Virus record (IMG/VR): IMGVR_UViG_3300047320_000285
Coordinates: 62,001 to 126,000 of that record
Reading direction: 5' to 3' (one strand)
DNA: 64,000 nucleotides
Below are positions 4,216 through 11,161 of this stretch, one piece after another. Made by a program: the position numbers and the translations under genes. How positions within the stretch are numbered: the first letter of the stretch is position 1; each line of letters starts with the position of its first letter. Below the pieces are notes generated by a model. The model saw only the letters and a list, made by a program, of their open reading frames with translations. It made no database searches and was not told where the DNA came from.

Positions 4216-4737
4216 ATGATCGCCCCGAAACGATACCAATATCCAAAAGACCGCAAGCGCGCCGTCTACAGTCGTTGGATGACCATCAACCGACGCTGTG
4301 AAGACCCGCGTTCGTACGACTATCCCTACTACGGCGCACAAGGTTACAGCGTGGCTTGGGAATGGTCACGCCAGAATCCGGACGGCTATACCAACTTCGC
4401 GACATGGCTGGAGGCTCAGTTGAAGTTGCAAACCAACCCGCAGTGTCGCAATGTGACGCTCAAGCCCGGGGAGAAAGTCTACAGCGCGAATAACTGCACG
4501 TTGGCGACCCGTCAAGAATTGGTACAGGACGGAGGGCGCACGACCCTGACGCAGGCCAACGTGATTGCCTTGCGTGCTTTGAAAAAGCAGGAACCCAAGA
4601 TCCGTTTAACGGACATCATCGAACGACTGGGCCTTGATGTCTCGGTGCCGGTTGTCTCCAATGCTTTACGTGGTATTACCTTTCAGAACCTAGACCATCT
4701 GGAAGCCCCTTATCTGCCCGAGGAAGTACAACAATGA
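4216..4737 (+). CDS. HNH-homing-endonuclease-like protein, probably degenerate
   Basis: VYSRW..INRRCEDP.S.DYPYYGAQG..V..EW and YSANNCTLATRQE motifs; the usual IDRID strand is missing. Confidence 0.6.
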   Translation: MIAPKRYQYPKDRKRAVYSRWMTINRRCEDPRSYDYPYYGAQGYSVAWEWSRQNPDGYTNFATWLEAQLKLQTNPQCRNVTLKPGEKVYSANNCTLATRQELVQDGGRTTLTQANVIALRALKKQEPKIRLTDIIERLGLDVSVPVVSNALRGITFQNLDHLEAPYLPEEVQQ

Positions 4738-5303
4738 TCTCCCGTTTCGCACGCAATATCGCTACCCTGCAGATGCTGGCTTTTGTCATCCTGCTGATCT
4801 GGCGTCCCGGCCATTCGTTGATGCCGGCTTTGGCTTTTCTGGCAGGTGTTTCAGCAACCATCATTGTCGACCGGTTACGACCGGACACGGTCCCGCAGTT
4901 GGAGATTCTGCGCGTGCCACCGGAGGACGATGACATCGAACGCGGGGTGATGGGGATGGTGGGAACAGAAGAGATCTGGATGCGCTCGATCACCGGTATG
5001 GCGCTCGGTGTATTGATCCCGGGACCGGAGACGATTCTGTACGCTGCGATCAAACACTCAGACGGTCGAATCTTTGCGGTGTCCCGCCCGGGTCGTCATG
5101 GTCATGTGCAGCAGTTGATGGAGATGCTCAACTCCGCCACACCCGAAGACTGCACGCCGGAGCGTCAAGGCTTCGTCACATCACTGGGTTCTTGGATGTC
5201 CCGTGAAGACGCACTGAAGGTTGCGCGCATCAACGACCAAGTCGTCTTCAAGCATCCGTCAGTGCGTGAGTTGTATAGCGAAGACATGTGGGATGCCGTT
5301 TAG
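4734..5303 (+). CDS. membrane-anchored hypothetical protein
   Basis: Two N-terminal hydrophobic segments; C-terminal RHGH..QGFVTSLG..SREDA..LYSEDMW phage domain. Confidence 0.7.
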   Translation: MISRFARNIATLQMLAFVILLIWRPGHSLMPALAFLAGVSATIIVDRLRPDTVPQLEILRVPPEDDDIERGVMGMVGTEEIWMRSITGMALGVLIPGPETILYAAIKHSDGRIFAVSRPGRHGHVQQLMEMLNSATPEDCTPERQGFVTSLGSWMSREDALKVARINDQVVFKHPSVRELYSEDMWDAV

Positions 5304-5356
5304 TTTTACAGCGCCGGTTCATTACCTGACACCACTAACATACGAAGGATAACACC

Positions 5357-5677
5357 ATGGGTACCCTGAAGCGCGGCGAGTACGCCCCCCGTAACGAACA
5401 AGACGAACTCGACATCGAAACCCAAGCTCGCGCATTGCAACACTACGCGCTGGAGCGGGGTTACGTGGTGGAGTTGCTGATCAAGTCCAATCCGGCCAAG
5501 CCGGTCACCGGTGCCCACACACTGGGCGTGGCCATGCGTCGTGTTCGCGCGGGCAGTCCGTTGACAGCGTTCGTGGGGCTGTCGAACAAGCCGCTCTCCG
5601 ATCTGTATGCTGGTGAACCGGCAGAAGACATTCCGGTCGCCGCATTCACCGATGTATTCAAGGAGGAGTCAGCATGA
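5357..5677 (+). CDS. hypothetical protein
   Basis: RBS AAGGA, 106 aa. Confidence 0.65.
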   Translation: MGTLKRGEYAPRNEQDELDIETQARALQHYALERGYVVELLIKSNPAKPVTGAHTLGVAMRRVRAGSPLTAFVGLSNKPLSDLYAGEPAEDIPVAAFTDVFKEESA

Positions 5678-6846
5678 CTTCGTTTGAAGAACTGCGTGCC
5701 GAGATCAAACAGGACGTCACCGACGAACTGGGGGACCGGGCACGGCAACACGCCTTGATGGCTCGCCTGCTGGTGTATCTGGGCGGGAAGTTCAAGGAGT
5801 CCGATCCTACCGGCGAACTCGCGACGCTTATGAGTGAGTTCCAGACCAGCCACGAAGAGCGTGAGCGTGAGCGCTTTTCGGTGGAGGAGTATTTCAACGG
5901 CTTGGGTCCGGTCGGCAAACGGGTCCTGGAAGCCGTGCGTCTGAACCAGACCATCGCGGGTCGTCACCAGATCGGCGCGCAGATGCATACGCTCTTTAAG
6001 GAAGCCCTCGCGCCGTTCAGGATTCCGATCTTTAAGGATCCGACCGCCACGCACGAGCTGTACCACCTGATTCAGGAAATCAGCATGCGGGTGTTCGGTC
6101 AATCGGCGACGCTACAGATACCGAGCATTCCGATGCACATGGGGCAGATCCTACCGGAGAATCGGGTCAGCAATTTTTACAACGTCTCGGCTGAAGATAC
6201 CATCACGCGTGAACCGTATTCGCTGGTGATGCTGTATGCGGAGATCGGCAAAGCGTGGGTCTGTGTGGACATTCGTTCCACCGGCCGGGCCCAGCTGATG
6301 TACTACCACAGCGCGGAAGATGTGTGGCTGTTTAACGTCGGCGAGTTCGTGCTGTTCGACATGGTCAAGCATCTGAAGGCAGAATGGGCGAAGCTCGAAA
6401 CCCAGATCGCTGACAAGCTGCCCAATGCTCACGTCAGTCTGCCGGAGACGATGGAAGCGCTGCAGGTGAAAGTCGATCGCGTCTTTGACAACGAACATCT
6501 GATCCCGGATGACGCACGCTATTACTTCCGCGATAAGCGCTTCCCGACCTCCAAGATCGTGCTGCGTATCAAGGACCTGCAAGTCAATTTGATCAACACC
6601 CGTGGCGATTACCCCAGTCGCAACATGTACCTGATTCGAGGGATCGAAGAGGTGATGTCGACGCGCGTCAAGCTTGAGGAACTGAGCCCGCTCGTGCAAA
6701 AACAGGTAATCGACGCAGTGGAAGATGTGCTGGATGGCTACATTGGCAACTACATCGATCCGAAGCCGAAGGAACCGGTGACGAGCACCCCGTTTAAGTT
6801 CCAGAACCCGGTGTTCAATCTGTACGTCGGCCGACCGAAGGAGTGA
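5674..6846 (+). CDS. hypothetical protein
   Basis: RBS AGGAGG, 390-aa ORF. Confidence 0.8.
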   Translation: MTSFEELRAEIKQDVTDELGDRARQHALMARLLVYLGGKFKESDPTGELATLMSEFQTSHEERERERFSVEEYFNGLGPVGKRVLEAVRLNQTIAGRHQIGAQMHTLFKEALAPFRIPIFKDPTATHELYHLIQEISMRVFGQSATLQIPSIPMHMGQILPENRVSNFYNVSAEDTITREPYSLVMLYAEIGKAWVCVDIRSTGRAQLMYYHSAEDVWLFNVGEFVLFDMVKHLKAEWAKLETQIADKLPNAHVSLPETMEALQVKVDRVFDNEHLIPDDARYYFRDKRFPTSKIVLRIKDLQVNLINTRGDYPSRNMYLIRGIEEVMSTRVKLEELSPLVQKQVIDAVEDVLDGYIGNYIDPKPKEPVTSTPFKFQNPVFNLYVGRPKE

Positions 6847-6933
6847 CCCCATGCTGCAACGTGATCCATTCTTTATTGCTTTGGTGGCTTCGCAGTTGCT
6901 TTAACGGGGCTGTGGCATAGAAAATCTCGGCGA

Positions 6934-6941
6934 TATATTCT
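6934..6941 (+). promoter_or_regulatory. degenerate early promoter motif (TATATTCT)
   Basis: Context AAATCTCGGCGA-TATATTCT resembles the 54739 site; lies upstream of the adhesin gene. Confidence 0.45.
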
Positions 6942-7052
6942 AATCGTGAGCTGCAACCTAAACAGCTCCTTTCTTTCGTGGGATTGACAGGATTACGGGG
7001 GTTCTGTCTCTTACTGACCATCCCCGATTATACTAGGAATAAGAATACAATC

Positions 7053-8930
7053 ATGAAGAAGAATATCATCGCAGTGGCAATTTTGGCTTCACTTGCTGTA
7101 TCGTCGGCATACGCAAATTGCGGTAATGGTGGTAGCAACGGGAATGGTTGCGGGGGCGAACAAGGACCGGCAGGCCCGCAAGGTCCCGCCGGTCCTCAGG
7201 GTCCGCAAGGTGTTGCGGGTCAGAACGGCAAGGACGGCGCGTCGGTTACTGGTGTCAGCATCAATGGCACTTCAGTCACGACAACGCTCTCCAATGGTTC
7301 GTCGGTGCAAGGTACGGTCACGGGGGTGGCTACGACTGCACAGCTGAACAGCACGAATAGCAACGTCGCGACGAACACGTCGAACATCACGACGCTGCAA
7401 GGTCAGGTTAGCCAGCAAGGCGGTGCAATCGCCGGTCTGCAGGTTAGTAGCGCCACGCACCAAGAAGTCGCTGACACGGCAGCCGGCACGCTGGCTGCCG
7501 CCAACGCCCACACGGATGCATCAGTGGGTGCAGAAGCGGCGCGCGCGAAGGGCGCCGAAGCAGGTCTGCAGTCGCAGATCAACGGCGTGAGCGGTACCGC
7601 CAACCAAGCGCTGGCGAATTCGAAGGACGCGCAGGCAACTGCGGGTCAAGCGAAGTCGATCGCGCAAGGCGCCGCGGCCACGGCTAACCAAGCCGAAGGC
7701 ATTGCAGTCGGTGCTGCTATCACAGCGACGGGTGCAGCGATCGTTGCCGGTCATGCAGAAGGCGTTGCTGAAAGTGCGGCCGCACAAGCCAAGTCGGCTA
7801 CGGCTACGGCGAACCATGCTGACTCAGTCGCCGGTCAAGCACTCGCAGCGGCGAAGGATGCCGACACGGATGCCGATGCGGCAGGCAAGGCAGCCGCACA
7901 CGCCCAAGGCACGGCAGACACAGCGCTGGCTTCGTCGGCACAAAACGCCAAGGACATCAAGTCCGAAGCGCAAGCCCGTGCAGCAGGCGATGCCGCCACG
8001 CTGAAGTCGGCCAATAGCTACACGGATTCGGCCGTGGCGAACGGGGTGTCGCAAGCAGAATCATACGCTGATGCTGGCGATGCCAAGACGCTGAATTCTG
8101 CGAACAAGCATGCGGACCAAGCCGCTGCGGCGGCCTACGTCGGTGCAGTCGCGACCTCGGCAGCTTACACGGATGCGACGGCGTCGAAGACGTTGAAGTC
8201 GGCGAATTCGTACACCGACAAAGCAGTTGGTGCCGAGTCTAGCCGCGCCCAATCGGCCGAAGGTCAACTGCAGTCCAACATCAATTCGGAATCGACTCGC
8301 GCGCAGACGGCTGAAGCTGGTCTGAACACGAAGATCGACAACGAAACGACGCGGGCGACGACAGCCGAAGCCGGGCTGCAAACCCAGATCAACGGGAACA
8401 GCCAGTCGATCACGCAAATCCAGTCGAACATGAACAAGGGCCAGATGGGTTCGGGCGCGCAAGTGCAATCGAACAACTCGGTGGCACTCGGTGCAGGTTC
8501 GGTGGCTGATCGTGACAACACGGTGTCGGTGGGTGCAGCAGGTGCCGAGCGTCAAGTGACGAACGTGGCAGCAGGTACGGCCGACACCGATGCGGTGAAC
8601 GTCGCGCAAGCTCGCTCGTACGCCCAGACGTCGTACCAGCAATCGACTGCTTACACGGATCAACGTGTGAACGCGCTGCAGAACTCGTTCGACAGCTTCA
8701 AGAAGGACACCTACGGTGGTCTGGCTTCGGTGCTGGCAATCGCGGGTCTGCCGCAACCGATCCAGAACGGCAAGTCGATGATCTCGGCGGCTGTCTCGAA
8801 CTACCACGGCGAGCAAGGTATTGCTGTCGGTATCTCAACCGTCCAAGGCAACTTCGTGATCAAGGCCGGTGTCTCCACGTCCACGCGCGGTGATGTCGGC
8901 GCAGTCGCTTCGGCAGGCTACCAGTTCTAA
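7053..8930 (+). CDS. YadA-family trimeric autotransporter adhesin with collagen-like segment
   Basis: Signal peptide [21 protein letters not shown]; (GXY)n; ANSYTD stalk repeats; [24 protein letters not shown] head-neck; beta-anchor ending GYQF. Confidence 0.9.
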
Positions 8931-8943
8931 GGGTAGCTTGAGC

Positions 8944-8977
8944 GGGAAAGGGGCCTTCGGGTCCCTTTTCTTTTTTT
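8944..8977 (+). terminator. canonical intrinsic terminator
   Basis: AAAGGGGCC-TTCG-GGTCCCTTT stem followed by a long T tract. Confidence 0.85.
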
Positions 8978-8997
8978 GTCCTTTCGAAGGAGTCAGG

Positions 8998-9378
8998 GTG
9001 AAACTGACGATGGATCAAGCGAACGCCTGCCTCGAAATGGGCGGTGCGTTCTTGCGTACTCTAGATTGTATCAAGCTGTTTCAGGACAAGCGCTTTAGCG
9101 GTGGGCATCTGGGTACGGCACTCTACTTCCTCGGGTGGGGTGTGTTCAACGTGTTCTTCTATCCGTCCCTGAATCAGGTGTGGAGTTTCTGGGCAGCGAT
9201 TGCGTTGATGGCGATGAACGGTTTGTGGTTTGTGATGGCAGTCCATTACAACTACTTCCACGACGGTCGACGGGTCTACACCCCGCAAGCAGTATTCGGT
9301 GGCCTGTTGCTAATCGGCATGCTGTACGGGATGTTCTTTCGGGATGGCTGGCAGATGCTTAGCTGGGTGTATCGATAA
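8998..9378 (+). CDS. small multi-TM membrane protein (PQ-loop/SemiSWEET-like)
   Basis: RBS AAGGAG before GTG; 3-4 hydrophobic helices; KLFQDK..SG...W..FN.FFY pattern. Confidence 0.55.
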   Translation: MKLTMDQANACLEMGGAFLRTLDCIKLFQDKRFSGGHLGTALYFLGWGVFNVFFYPSLNQVWSFWAAIALMAMNGLWFVMAVHYNYFHDGRRVYTPQAVFGGLLLIGMLYGMFFRDGWQMLSWVYR

Positions 9379-9388
9379 GGAGAGCAAG

Positions 9389-9682
9389 ATGAGTTTCAAT
9401 TGGCCGTTGGACGATCGTCGGCGCGAGATGATTGGTTCGGTATTGAAAGTGCGCGGCAAAGAGATGGCAGAACTCGGTCACAACATCCGCACGGATATGC
9501 CGATTCGTGACCTGACCGAGTCGGACAAAAAGCGCATGCTGGAAGACATCATGATCGGTGCCACCAATCTGGCCTCGGCGTTTGGCATGGTGATTGCAGT
9601 GGGACCGAAAGTCAATCCCGCTGCGAAAGATGGCTATCAATTACAGGCAGTCGAGATCACTACCCGGGCTAAACTCTTTTAG
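9389..9682 (+). CDS. hypothetical protein
   Basis: RBS AAGGAG before ATG 9389. Confidence 0.7.
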   Translation: MSFNWPLDDRRREMIGSVLKVRGKEMAELGHNIRTDMPIRDLTESDKKRMLEDIMIGATNLASAFGMVIAVGPKVNPAAKDGYQLQAVEITTRAKLF

Positions 9683-9690
9683 GAGTCGTT

Positions 9691-10248
9691 ATGCGGCGTA
9701 TCGGCACCGTAACCGCGTTCTACAGTTACAAAGACTTCCTGAGTAATCACTACCGCTGTCGCTTTACGGTTCATGGCGTGAGCTTTAACTGTCTCGAGCA
9801 ATTCATCATGTACTGCAAAGCCATGTGCTTTGGGGACACCGAGATTGCCCGGCAGGTACTGGAAGCGAATCACCCGCAAGACCAGAAGATTCTCGGCCGT
9901 AAGGTGAAGGGTTTCGTGCGGCACCTCTGGTACCAGAAGATCGAGCAATGGTACGTGCAGGGCGTGATTGCGCGCTACGAGCAGAATCCGCATGATCTGA
10001 AGCTGTTGCTCGCGACTGGTGATACGGTACTGGTGGAAGCCGCCAAGAACGACGGGATCTGGGGCGTCTGTATGGATGAAACCGATGACGACATCCAGCA
10101 CGAGTGGAAATGGCGTGGCACCAACCTATGTGGGAAGGGCCAGCAAGCGGCTCGTGAACACTTTAAACGACAAGGAATTACTCATGCGACACATGTTGAT
10201 AGTCGGTTCGGTGCGAGCTATCAAGCTCTTGGTAGTGCCGTTCATTGA
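9691..10248 (+). CDS. NADAR (YbiA-like) family hydrolase
   Basis: FLSNHY..F, EQFIMYCKAMCFGD, K.LGRKVKGF, LLATGD..LVEA...DGIWG, W.G.NL.G motifs. Confidence 0.9.
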   Translation: MRRIGTVTAFYSYKDFLSNHYRCRFTVHGVSFNCLEQFIMYCKAMCFGDTEIARQVLEANHPQDQKILGRKVKGFVRHLWYQKIEQWYVQGVIARYEQNPHDLKLLLATGDTVLVEAAKNDGIWGVCMDETDDDIQHEWKWRGTNLCGKGQQAAREHFKRQGITHATHVDSRFGASYQALGSAVH

Positions 10249-10278
10249 CCTGCGTCGCGTCATGAAACGGAGGTCCGA

Positions 10279-10719
10279 ATGCGGGCATTGCGCTTTGCGC
10301 TAGAAGGGGAGCCACCACCCGAGTTACCAGTGCTGTCAGTTGACTTCGACGGCACGGTGCACTCTTACGAGTGGGGTTGGCAAGACGGCACGATCTATGG
10401 CACGGTGATCCCGGGTTTCTTCGAATGGCTGATGAGCGTCTACGAGAAATTCACCGTGGTGATCTTCTCGACGCGTTCGGCTGAAGCCGACAAGCTTGAA
10501 GACATGGCACGCTGGCTCAACGAACAGTGGATCATGTGGCGTCATGGTGAGCACGGCGATAGCGACGCACCGGAAGAAATCCCGGTGTCGTTCAGTGCTG
10601 ACAAGCCCAAAGCGCATGTGTCGATCGATGACCGCACGATTCGCTTTGAAGGCAAATGGGATGCGGAGGAATTGCAGCCCGAAGCACTGGCGGCGTTCAA
10701 GCCGTGGACGGAGCGTTAG
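10279..10719 (+). CDS. HAD-superfamily phosphatase
   Basis: Motif I DFDGT, motif II FSTR, motif IV KP.A..SIDDR. Confidence 0.8.
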   Translation: MRALRFALEGEPPPELPVLSVDFDGTVHSYEWGWQDGTIYGTVIPGFFEWLMSVYEKFTVVIFSTRSAEADKLEDMARWLNEQWIMWRHGEHGDSDAPEEIPVSFSADKPKAHVSIDDRTIRFEGKWDAEELQPEALAAFKPWTER

Positions 10720-10721
10720 GA

Positions 10722-10752
10722 TAGTGCCGGCCTTCGGGTCGGCTGCTATGCC
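10722..10752 (+). terminator. hairpin + TATGCC terminator-like element
   Basis: GCCGGCC-TTCG-GGTCGGC followed by TGCTATGCC. Confidence 0.75.
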
Positions 10753-10813
10753 GTTAATCAATTTTTAACGATCTAAGTCCATGTAGTGTAGGCATTGCGT
10801 CTAAGGAGCTGAC

Positions 10814-11161
10814 ATGGAACCGATCACCTGTCCTCAGTGCGGTAATGACGTCCGCTTCCAAGATCTCGAATACGGTCAGGAAGAGGAACACTACAGCGGC
10901 TTTCGATGTCCCCATTGCGGGGGTGTAGGAATACGCATGAGTGTGTACAAGGAAGAGCCACTGCCGTGCTTTACCTATCCATACTTCATGCCGTTTGACC
11001 TTGCTGGAAGATTGCAGTTTGTCAGTGGCGAATGTCGGCGAGATGCGTTTACGTTTGTTTCCAAAAGCGGCGTCTCCCGACTGGATCGTGAACTGGTCAC
11101 ACAACTCAGGGCCTTACCCGAGCCTGAGGAAGAACCCGATTTCATCTGCTACTTTCACTGA
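10814..11161 (+). CDS. Zn-ribbon protein with C-terminal EPDFICYFH tag
   Basis: RBS AAGGAG; CPQC...CPHC. Confidence 0.75.
   Translation: MEPITCPQCGNDVRFQDLEYGQEEEHYSGFRCPHCGGVGIRMSVYKEEPLPCFTYPYFMPFDLAGRLQFVSGECRRDAFTFVSKSGVSRLDRELVTQLRALPEPEEEPDFICYFH

Follow-up and report, generated by a model that had tools for sequence, protein, structure and literature searches.

A trimeric autotransporter adhesin gene with a collagen-like run and an early-type promoter in a phiKZ-like jumbo phage

Background

Does an adhesin gene found in the genome of a lytic jumbo phage belong to the phage, and, if so, what would the phage do with an adhesive fibre on the surface of its host? The question is raised by a gene (P0001) in a 64,000-nucleotide stretch of DNA (hereafter the window), which comprises bases 62,001-126,000 of the 253,740-bp IMG/VR record IMGVR_UViG_3300047320_000285 (hereafter G000). 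An earlier note on this DNA had described the gene product as a complete trimeric autotransporter adhesin with a collagen-like tip, and had proposed that it is displayed on infected cells, perhaps for aggregation with uninfected neighbours or for the shielding of receptors. Proteins of this class (type Vc) are exported by Sec, trimerise, and form a 12-strand barrel with the assistance of the β-barrel assembly machinery (BAM); the passenger is then extruded, with the N-terminus farthest from the cell. YadA-family proteins are adhesins and are frequently auto-agglutinating. Small exclusion proteins are known by which lytic phages remodel the cell envelope, and among the conversion genes of temperate phages there are adhesins. 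We propose, as the best explanation of the data below, that the product of the gene is a functional surface fibre of type Vc, and that the gene is the phage's own and not a fragment of the host.

Results

Layout of the encoded protein

The Pfam model of the YadA-type anchor (PF03895) matched the C-terminus of the window protein with 54.2 bits (cut-off, 22.7; E = 1.5e-14) and gave 60 bits (E = 6.3e-17) in a six-frame search of the genome; the anchor sequence also matched the anchors of Hia and YadA among the PDB sequences, and a coiled coil lies directly before it. In a monomer model of the last 165 residues, one long helix (H57-104) and four strands were predicted, with a predicted local distance difference test score (pLDDT) of 62-77 for the anchor. 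The five best fold matches in PDB were the anchors of Hia, AtaA and YadA (template modelling score, 0.62-0.75 depending on the target; root-mean-square deviation, 2.8-3.4 Å for four of the five), and a sharp gap in E-value followed these top five.

The passenger was resolved into several modules (Table 1). Residues 462-522 aligned to SadA (2yo0/2yo3), 4usx (deposited as 'trimeric autotransporter adhesin'), BpaC (7o23) and YadA (1p9h) with E-values of 6e-15 to 6e-9 (PDB sequences), and a near-identical counterpart in the phage homolog L004 matched Pfam YadA_stalk (E = 1.2e-18); the Pfam head and stalk models found no match in the window protein itself at E<=0.1. Of the YadA head and neck claimed by the earlier note, the neck and one head-like repeat were thus recovered, and a large globular head was not seen. 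The preceding stalk is rich in Ala (22.6% of the whole protein, 40-42% in residues 201-300, with a maximum of 42% per 50 residues) and contains three 18-residue repeats (S/T-x-RA-xx-AE-xx-L-xxx-I) and three copies of TLxSANxYTD; a helix was predicted for residues 95-178 (pLDDT, 81-91; monomer model). The head, neck and stalk modules expected of a type Vc passenger are therefore represented by the head-like repeat with the neck and by the long helical stalk.

At the N-terminus, the leader has two Lys, a 15-residue hydrophobic core (mean Kyte-Doolittle value, 2.4) and a cleavage motif AYA/N (inspection only), and its n-, h- and c-regions are conserved in all homologs (see below). The Pfam ESPR model (PF13018) found no match in the window protein, though ESPR is present in many of the bacterial relatives. 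A loop closed by two Cys near the mature N-terminus is shared by 11 of the 12 closer phage homologs (the exception is L004), and in nine of them the loop abuts a Gly-X-Y run. In the window protein this run has 10 uninterrupted triplets, or 11 if G32-C-G is counted, and five of them have Pro in position X; the run of the earlier note is therefore real, and its count of 'about nine' was too low. At the equivalent position, 10 triplets were found in L003, 26 in L004 and 55 in L021, and no run of >=5 in phage FLC9. The homologs of L021 (88 bits), L004 (52 bits) and Caballeronia (90 bits) pass the Pfam Collagen model (PF01391) there. Note that, in the window protein itself, the putative collagen-like run was called from the triplet pattern and the homologs, and not from the Pfam threshold. 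Between the run and the stalk, the monomer model predicted three strands (residues 65-71, 74-79 and 84-88; pLDDT, 65-81) that form a connector, for which Pfam has no model; many of its alignment columns are invariant across nine phages.

The start codon was assigned to ATG 7053, as homologs all begin at the equivalent Met (MKK or MKT). A GTG at 6978 was considered as an alternative start and was rejected; the longer frame would bury the leader, and the starts of the homologs agree with 7053. On every testable feature of sequence and model, we assign the window protein to the trimeric autotransporter (type Vc) family. The complete layout named in the earlier note (Sec leader, loop, Gly-X-Y triplets, Ala-rich repeats, and β-barrel anchor ending in Phe) was confirmed; the last four residues are GYQF.

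The carrier genome

The record G000 (GC content, 57%) has a 127-bp terminal repeat at its ends. Profile searches identified the β subunit of a phiKZ-type multisubunit RNA polymerase (RNAP) (phrog_3148, 1697 bits) and a phiKZ-type major head protein (phrog_3231, 617 bits); a large terminase, a DNA polymerase and baseplate proteins are also encoded. With these two hallmark genes and a length above 200 kb, G000 falls in the phiKZ-like class. Neither a tyrosine integrase nor a serine recombinase/resolvase was found in G000 by searches that do detect them in control genomes. The description as a lytic jumbo phage, phiKZ-like, is thus supported, where the lytic life style is deduced from the gene content and the known phage type. 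A tubulin-like open reading frame (ORF) outside the window (G000:C1:220607-221077; PF00091, E = 2e-7, below the cut-off) fits a putative PhuZ-type spindle of nucleus-forming phages.

The sole public run with the window sequence is a DNA run of a rhizosphere metagenome, which is probably its source. In a second assembly of this run, which is not independent data, positions 4500-10400 were covered by one 56.5-kb contig with zero differences.

Homologs and phylogeny

When the 6-kb region 5000-11000 was compared with 50,697 phage records by megablast, the only match was the 3' half of the adhesin gene in Burkholderia phage FLC9 (321.8 kb; host, B. glumae). Its product gp240 (BDD79759.1; 721 aa, deposited as 'hypothetical protein') has the same type of leader and the identical Cys loop, and lacks the collagen-like run; it is 60% identical to the window protein overall and 85% over the last 331 residues. 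The flanking genes are syntenic in FLC9 (22-52% identical), and the locus is also syntenic in L003. Over the 167 kb of FLC9 that was covered, 82 proteins are shared with a median identity of 42% (90th percentile, 60%; RNAP β, 56%; DNA polymerase, 59%; head, 51%), and the last 331 residues of the adhesin rank first among them. The earlier note had named a host or prophage chimera as an outcome that would overturn its reading; this is excluded by the synteny in FLC9 and other jumbo-phage contigs and by the second assembly.

A more distant copy is encoded by phage BCSR5 (227 kb; QRE00188.1, 1261 aa, also deposited as 'hypothetical protein'), in which Pfam head, stalk and anchor were all matched; it is ~24% identical outside the anchor. 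Eight IMG/VR contigs with a copy measure 159-315 kb, and a further one measures 41 kb. A scan of IMG/VR with exact peptides of the major head protein found no relative, and an RNAP-β alignment was used in its place. The three near-complete genomes that this alignment found in IMG/VR all carry the adhesin, as do all six of the fairly complete clade genomes checked, and in total at least 12 large phage contigs or genomes have the gene.

Further copies came from records that are not labelled as phages. L021 (JARLJL010000015.1; 245,075 bp, in a metagenome-assembled genome (MAG) of Sulfuriferula sp.) encodes an 846-aa adhesin with the 55 Gly-X-Y triplets noted above, together with jumbo-phage genes up to 73% identical to those of G000, including the neighbour gene of the adhesin; it is most likely a jumbo-phage genome, apparently mis-binned into a bacterial MAG. 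L032 (Ga0466959_0000001; 523,572 bp) encodes a 611-aa YadA-anchor protein that is 34% identical to the window protein over the full length, among dozens of small unannotated genes on the same strand, and looks like a huge phage. In Caballeronia sp. SEWSISQ10-4 (L022:5431-6249), a 272-aa protein consists only of a leader, 51 Gly-X-Y triplets and a YadA anchor; its gene lies between replication genes and a small terminase gene (context L033), i.e. in a prophage. The carriers of the phage lineage are accordingly phiKZ-like jumbo phages, the ~0.5-Mb contig, the 41-kb viral contig and a temperate prophage.

The bacterial relatives are adhesins of Paraburkholderia, Caballeronia and Burkholderia, mostly 40-56% identical (higher in short segments) and mainly to the C-terminal quarter of the query. 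No bacterial protein exceeded about 56% identity over long stretches, and the one case of 70% is itself prophage-borne. A maximum-likelihood tree was reconstructed from the last 150 residues (short alignment, quick search, arbitrary root). All phage-borne copies fell in one group (Shimodaira-Hasegawa-like approximate likelihood ratio test (SH-aLRT), 87), and within it a single clade (94) united the ten closest jumbo-phage copies; sequences of Caballeronia and Paraburkholderia surround it in the tree. The tree supports a phage-borne lineage of Burkholderiaceae ancestry and bears on neither direction nor date. A phylogeny against the Burkholderia adhesins had been suggested by the earlier note as a check, and its outcome is such a phage-borne lineage and not a recent host capture. 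Recent capture from the host was rejected as an origin of the gene; none of the bacterial relatives shows close similarity over a long stretch, and the two members of the group that were filed as bacterial proved to be phage-borne.

Mosaic evolution

The nearest homolog changes along the protein: L003 for residues 61-120 (83% identity), FLC9 for residues 301-540 (86-100% per 30-residue block, with one block at 63%), and L021 for residues 541-600 (73-93% per block), with which a two-residue deletion in the anchor is also shared. Residues 297-540 are 84% identical to FLC9 in nucleotides and 88.5% in amino acids with 0.53 synonymous substitutions per synonymous site (dS), whereas dS against FLC9 is 1.8-2.2 in the N-terminal segments. 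Between the homologs, whole blocks of the stalk have been inserted or deleted. Against four phage homologs, the ratio of nonsynonymous to synonymous substitution rates (dN/dS) was 0.1-0.3 in every segment, indicating purifying selection. The third-position GC of the adhesin gene (0.653) is within that of the G000 genes (0.697 +/- 0.083); that of the Caballeronia gene is 0.788. A passenger that is mosaic and variable in length, with a conserved anchor, is as expected of an exposed surface protein. We take the adhesin to be a functional, long-resident phage gene, of which the exposed part has been reshuffled between related phages.

Transcription signals

The motif AAATCTCGGCGATATATTCTAATCGTGAGCTG upstream of the gene, with its AT-rich core TATATTCT, scored 18.1 bits with a matrix made from 13 other sites of G000 (its own site was left out), a score that was reached by 0.7% of random 263-nt windows. 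In G000, the AT-rich word TATATTAC occurs very rarely, as do variants of it, and the occurrences have common flanks (tTTTCAR-n3-4-yATATTACy..TG.A). A matrix search of G000 gave about 20 sites, 18 of them on the + strand and mostly intergenic; simulated genomes gave 0-3. Consensus sequences of early motifs have been tabulated for phiKZ (TATATTAC), N1M2/OBP (TTTCARRYAKATATTAT), N1M2 (TTTCARRYAKATATTATYWAAGTG) and also 201phi2-1 (PMC7058600), and the consensus of G000 (tTTTCARnnnyATATTAC) matches the published ones of phiKZ, OBP, 201phi2-1 and N1M2 (PMC7058600). According to a review (PMC7598289), AT-rich motifs of this kind, which are about 10 nt long, centred near -10 and repeated ahead of presumed early operons, were found by bioinformatics and proved to be early promoters of the virion RNAP wherever transcripts were profiled. 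Of 14 phage loci examined, 10 have the same motif ahead of the homologous gene, at a distance of 68-138 nt; the core upstream of FLC9 gp240 is TATATAAC, and BCSR5 has no matching motif. The early-promoter-like motif that the earlier note had placed upstream is hence borne out by the genome family and the homolog loci.

Just 3' of the promoter core, a hairpin of eight pairs is shared by eight phages, and three of the pairs are compensatory (for example, C-G to U-A in three sequences). The terminator that the earlier note had placed downstream is also present in the sequence; it begins fourteen bases past the stop codon of the adhesin gene, and CCTTCGGG-type hairpins recur in the intergenic regions of G000. 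The adhesin gene looks like a self-contained early transcription unit, where its putative timing and start site are read from the motifs.

A promoter of the host sigma-70 type was sought and rejected. One weak match (6912-6939, 9/12) is no better than chance, and a perfect TTGACA (6984-6989) has no -10 partner at 15-19 nt; a host-type promoter is unsupported.

As for the rest of the genome, G000 has about 18 further copies of the motif, nearly all on the + strand and several of them followed by a hairpin; those in the window lie at 1054, 14079, 31339, 47959 and 54739, and an early-type copy at 219134 of G000 is associated with the tubulin-like ORF. The copies across G000 give a ready map of presumed early transcription units. 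In addition, an inverted-repeat word (GGCTTTATGCCG / CGGCATAAA) is enriched between the genes of G000 (at least 12 places) and possibly represents another element, with a regulatory or terminator-like role.

Table 1. Coordinates of the adhesin gene, its protein segments and the flanking signals (window positions, + strand)
Feature	Position	Strand	Residues	Basis
Early-promoter-like motif AAATCTCGGCGATATATTCTAATCGTGAGCTG	6922..6953	+		matrix score, genome family, homolog loci
AT-rich core TATATTCT of the promoter motif	6934-6941	+		part of AAATCTCGGCGATATATTCTAATCGTGAGCTG
Hairpin just 3' of the promoter core, probably the mRNA 5' end	6947..6970	+		consensus structure, 8 phages
Adhesin gene (P0001), trimeric-autotransporter type, 625 aa	7053..8930 (including stop)	+	1-625	ORF, Pfam/NCBIfam/PDB matches
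Predicted Sec-type signal peptide, not of the extended ESPR type	7053..7115	+	1-21	inspection
Cys loop, C-x9-C	7119..7151	+	23-33	no other Cys in the protein
Collagen-like run, 10 Gly-X-Y triplets	7155..7244	+	35-64	triplet pattern
Three-strand β connector between collagen-like run and stalk	7245..7316	+	65-88	monomer model, conservation
Ala-rich α-helical stalk with repeats	7335..8435	+	95-461	model, composition, repeats, homolog indels
Segment exchanged recently with the FLC9 lineage	7941..8672	+	297-540	dS, identity, megablast match
Short YadA-like head repeat and neck	8436..8618	+	462-522	PDB sequence matches, NCBIfam
YadA-like membrane anchor, ending GYQF	8751..8927	+	567-625	PF03895
Intrinsic terminator, 12-pair stem, TTCG loop, then T run	8944..8981 (stem 8944-8971)	+		inverted-repeat/T-run pattern

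Discussion

Proposed function

From the motifs, the virion RNAP would transcribe the gene soon after DNA entry, from the early promoter and as a single-gene unit to its own terminator. The transcript would be made early, while the export and assembly machines of the host are still working. The protein would be exported by the host Sec system, and, by analogy with the known type Vc proteins, three C-terminal segments would build a 12-strand barrel with the host BAM, through which the passenger would be threaded out. Fibres on the infected cell would then present, at the far end, a disulfide-stapled collagen-like triple helix, followed by the β connector and the Ala-rich coiled coil; the trimeric stalk may nucleate the triple helix via the connector, and the Cys loop may staple it. 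As the last and least certain step, infected cells would stick to neighbours or surfaces, and large, slowly diffusing virions would be released beside new hosts. The adhesion role was chosen because the family usually acts in adhesion, because giant virions travel only slowly by diffusion, and because these phages live in structured habitats (rhizosphere, compost). Display of the adhesin on the infected cell we consider likely from established type Vc biology. As for the whole chain, from early expression through export and display to a role in adhesion or auto-aggregation, our assessment is tentative and lies slightly below an even chance.

Several points weigh against this proposal. The C-terminal monomer model is weak overall (mean pLDDT, 50.5), and the window protein lacks a recognisable binding head. 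The Pfam Collagen model gave 15.7 bits, under its cut-off of 27.2, because the Gly-X-Y run is short, and a collagen helix that forms autonomously would be expected to have more than 10 triplets. The Shine-Dalgarno-like AGGAA lies rather far from the ATG (13 nt). No public RNA run has the window sequence, which matches only the DNA run of origin. The export step would depend on Sec and BAM functions persisting in infected cells, and no result separates adhesion from shielding.

Shielding is the first alternative. Here the fibre layer would protect the infected cell by superinfection exclusion (of kin or competitors), or would keep the progeny off debris; we rate this as possible and on the unlikely side, yet nearly as likely as adhesion. 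The promoter is of the early class, the fibre length varies widely (0-55 triplets and indels in the stalk), and the passenger is mosaic and recombining like arms-race genes. The Caballeronia prophage has a minimal relative of leader, collagen and anchor, and exclusion genes are common in prophages. A precedent is found in the outer-membrane or periplasmic exclusion proteins of other lytic phages (for example, T5 Llp), which are made early and alter the surface of the infected cell. They are, however, small lipoproteins that bind one receptor, are unrelated to the window protein in sequence and fold, and are not long fibres. Moreover, no receptor is known for the present phages, trimeric autotransporters are not known among exclusion proteins, and the documented activities of the family are adhesion, aggregation and serum resistance.

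It is far less probable that the protein is a fibre of the virion, with the 'anchor' as a mere trimerisation module. Tail fibres often contain YadA-like and collagen-like segments, and YadA-like domains are already known in virion (structural) proteins of lytic phages (PMC9146016). The window protein gave weak PHROG matches to tail-fibre families (E = 0.0015-0.03), residues 382-447 matched tail fibres of Vibrio phages by tblastn, and its Atlas feature neighbours include collagen-bearing tail fibres (scores < 0.9, leads only). A cleavable Sec leader and a full four-strand anchor with an aromatic end would, however, be out of place in a virion assembled in the cytoplasm. In addition, structural genes are expressed late, which does not fit a promoter of the early class, and the gene lies among small genes of the early region, away from the baseplate, head and terminase genes.

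The least probable explanation, that the gene is chance host DNA, was joined to the phage by faulty assembly, or has no function in the lytic cycle, could appeal to the Burkholderiaceae adhesins as nearest bacterial relatives and to the metagenomic origin of the window, but is already contradicted by the synteny with the isolated phage FLC9, the recurrence of the gene in the large phage genomes counted above, the conserved phage promoter and purifying selection, the low identity of bacterial proteins over long stretches (<= about 56%; 70% only in a prophage), and the second assembly that spans the locus.

Comparison with known systems

With the bacterial type Vc proteins (YadA, Hia, SadA, BpaC and AtaA), the window protein shares the leader, the fibrous passenger of neck and coiled coil, and the PF03895 anchor of a helix and four strands with an aromatic end. 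Unlike them, it is encoded by a jumbo phage of lytic type and has an early promoter of the phage ahead of its gene; it has neither an ESPR leader nor a sizeable head, and carries at the far end the Cys loop, the collagen-like run and the β connector.

The Eib genes are lysogenic-conversion genes on temperate lambdoid prophages. Their products, the immunoglobulin-binding proteins of E. coli, are trimeric autotransporters (PMC4352079). Unlike these, the window gene is carried by a phiKZ-like phage that encodes RNA polymerases of its own and in which no integrase was found, and the Eib proteins have no collagen-like tip. In the Caballeronia prophage protein, the anchor is 69% identical to the last 83 residues of the window protein and belongs to the same phage-borne group of the tree, whereas the stalk, neck and Cys loop are lacking and the vehicle is temperate. 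One report (PMC3368898) describes Gly-X-Y runs in phage-encoded trimeric fibres and in prophage and tail-fibre proteins, for example of E. coli O157 prophages. Such collagen-like phage and prophage proteins are virion or secreted proteins and lack the pair of leader and outer-membrane anchor that the window protein has. Ralstonia RcpA/RcpB and the 'collagen middle region' lipoproteins of the Burkholderia cepacia complex were rejected as comparators; according to their authors, they lack either a contiguous Gly-X-Y run or a YadA anchor.

In the searchable literature, outside of which many subscription journals lie, we found no report of a complete leader-to-anchor adhesin from any lytic jumbo phage, phiKZ-like or other, and none of this collagen-tipped architecture. 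The protein family is ordinary; its carrier and regulation, the lineage borne by phages and the tip are not.

Implications

If the proposal of an infected-cell fibre is true, jumbo phages of the obligately lytic, nucleus-forming type would possess a complete and conserved outer-membrane fibre driven by an early promoter, which would be a new kind of phenotype of the infected cell, and the phage would set what its host cell sticks to, or what reaches the cell surface, during the latent period. A wider reading, which we think unlikely, is that a phage-resident lineage of trimeric autotransporters serves in jumbo phages as an early 'infected-cell adhesin' that would tether the doomed cell to its neighbours or to root and soil surfaces. 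Contact-based spread would then offset the poor diffusion of giant virions, and the recombining, collagen-tipped passenger would set the binding partners. Clumping or attachment of infected cells would affect phage spread and would be relevant to the use of such phages in crop biocontrol. Both FLC9 and BCSR5 are cultured, so the question of the adhesin is directly testable. The protein would also offer a natural join of a collagen-like triple helix to a coiled-coil stalk.

Neighbouring genes

Right past the adhesin terminator begins a gene for a small protein with several hydrophobic segments (window 8998-9378, + strand), which matched no Pfam model and for which FLC9 yielded no counterpart. 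Further downstream (window 9691-10248, + strand), a NADAR-domain protein is encoded (PF08719, E = 2.9e-35). A NADAR gene two or three genes downstream of the adhesin is also present in FLC9 (52% identity) and L003 (47%). Its product is possibly an enzyme that reverses ADP-ribosylation, which makes it a candidate counter-defence gene.

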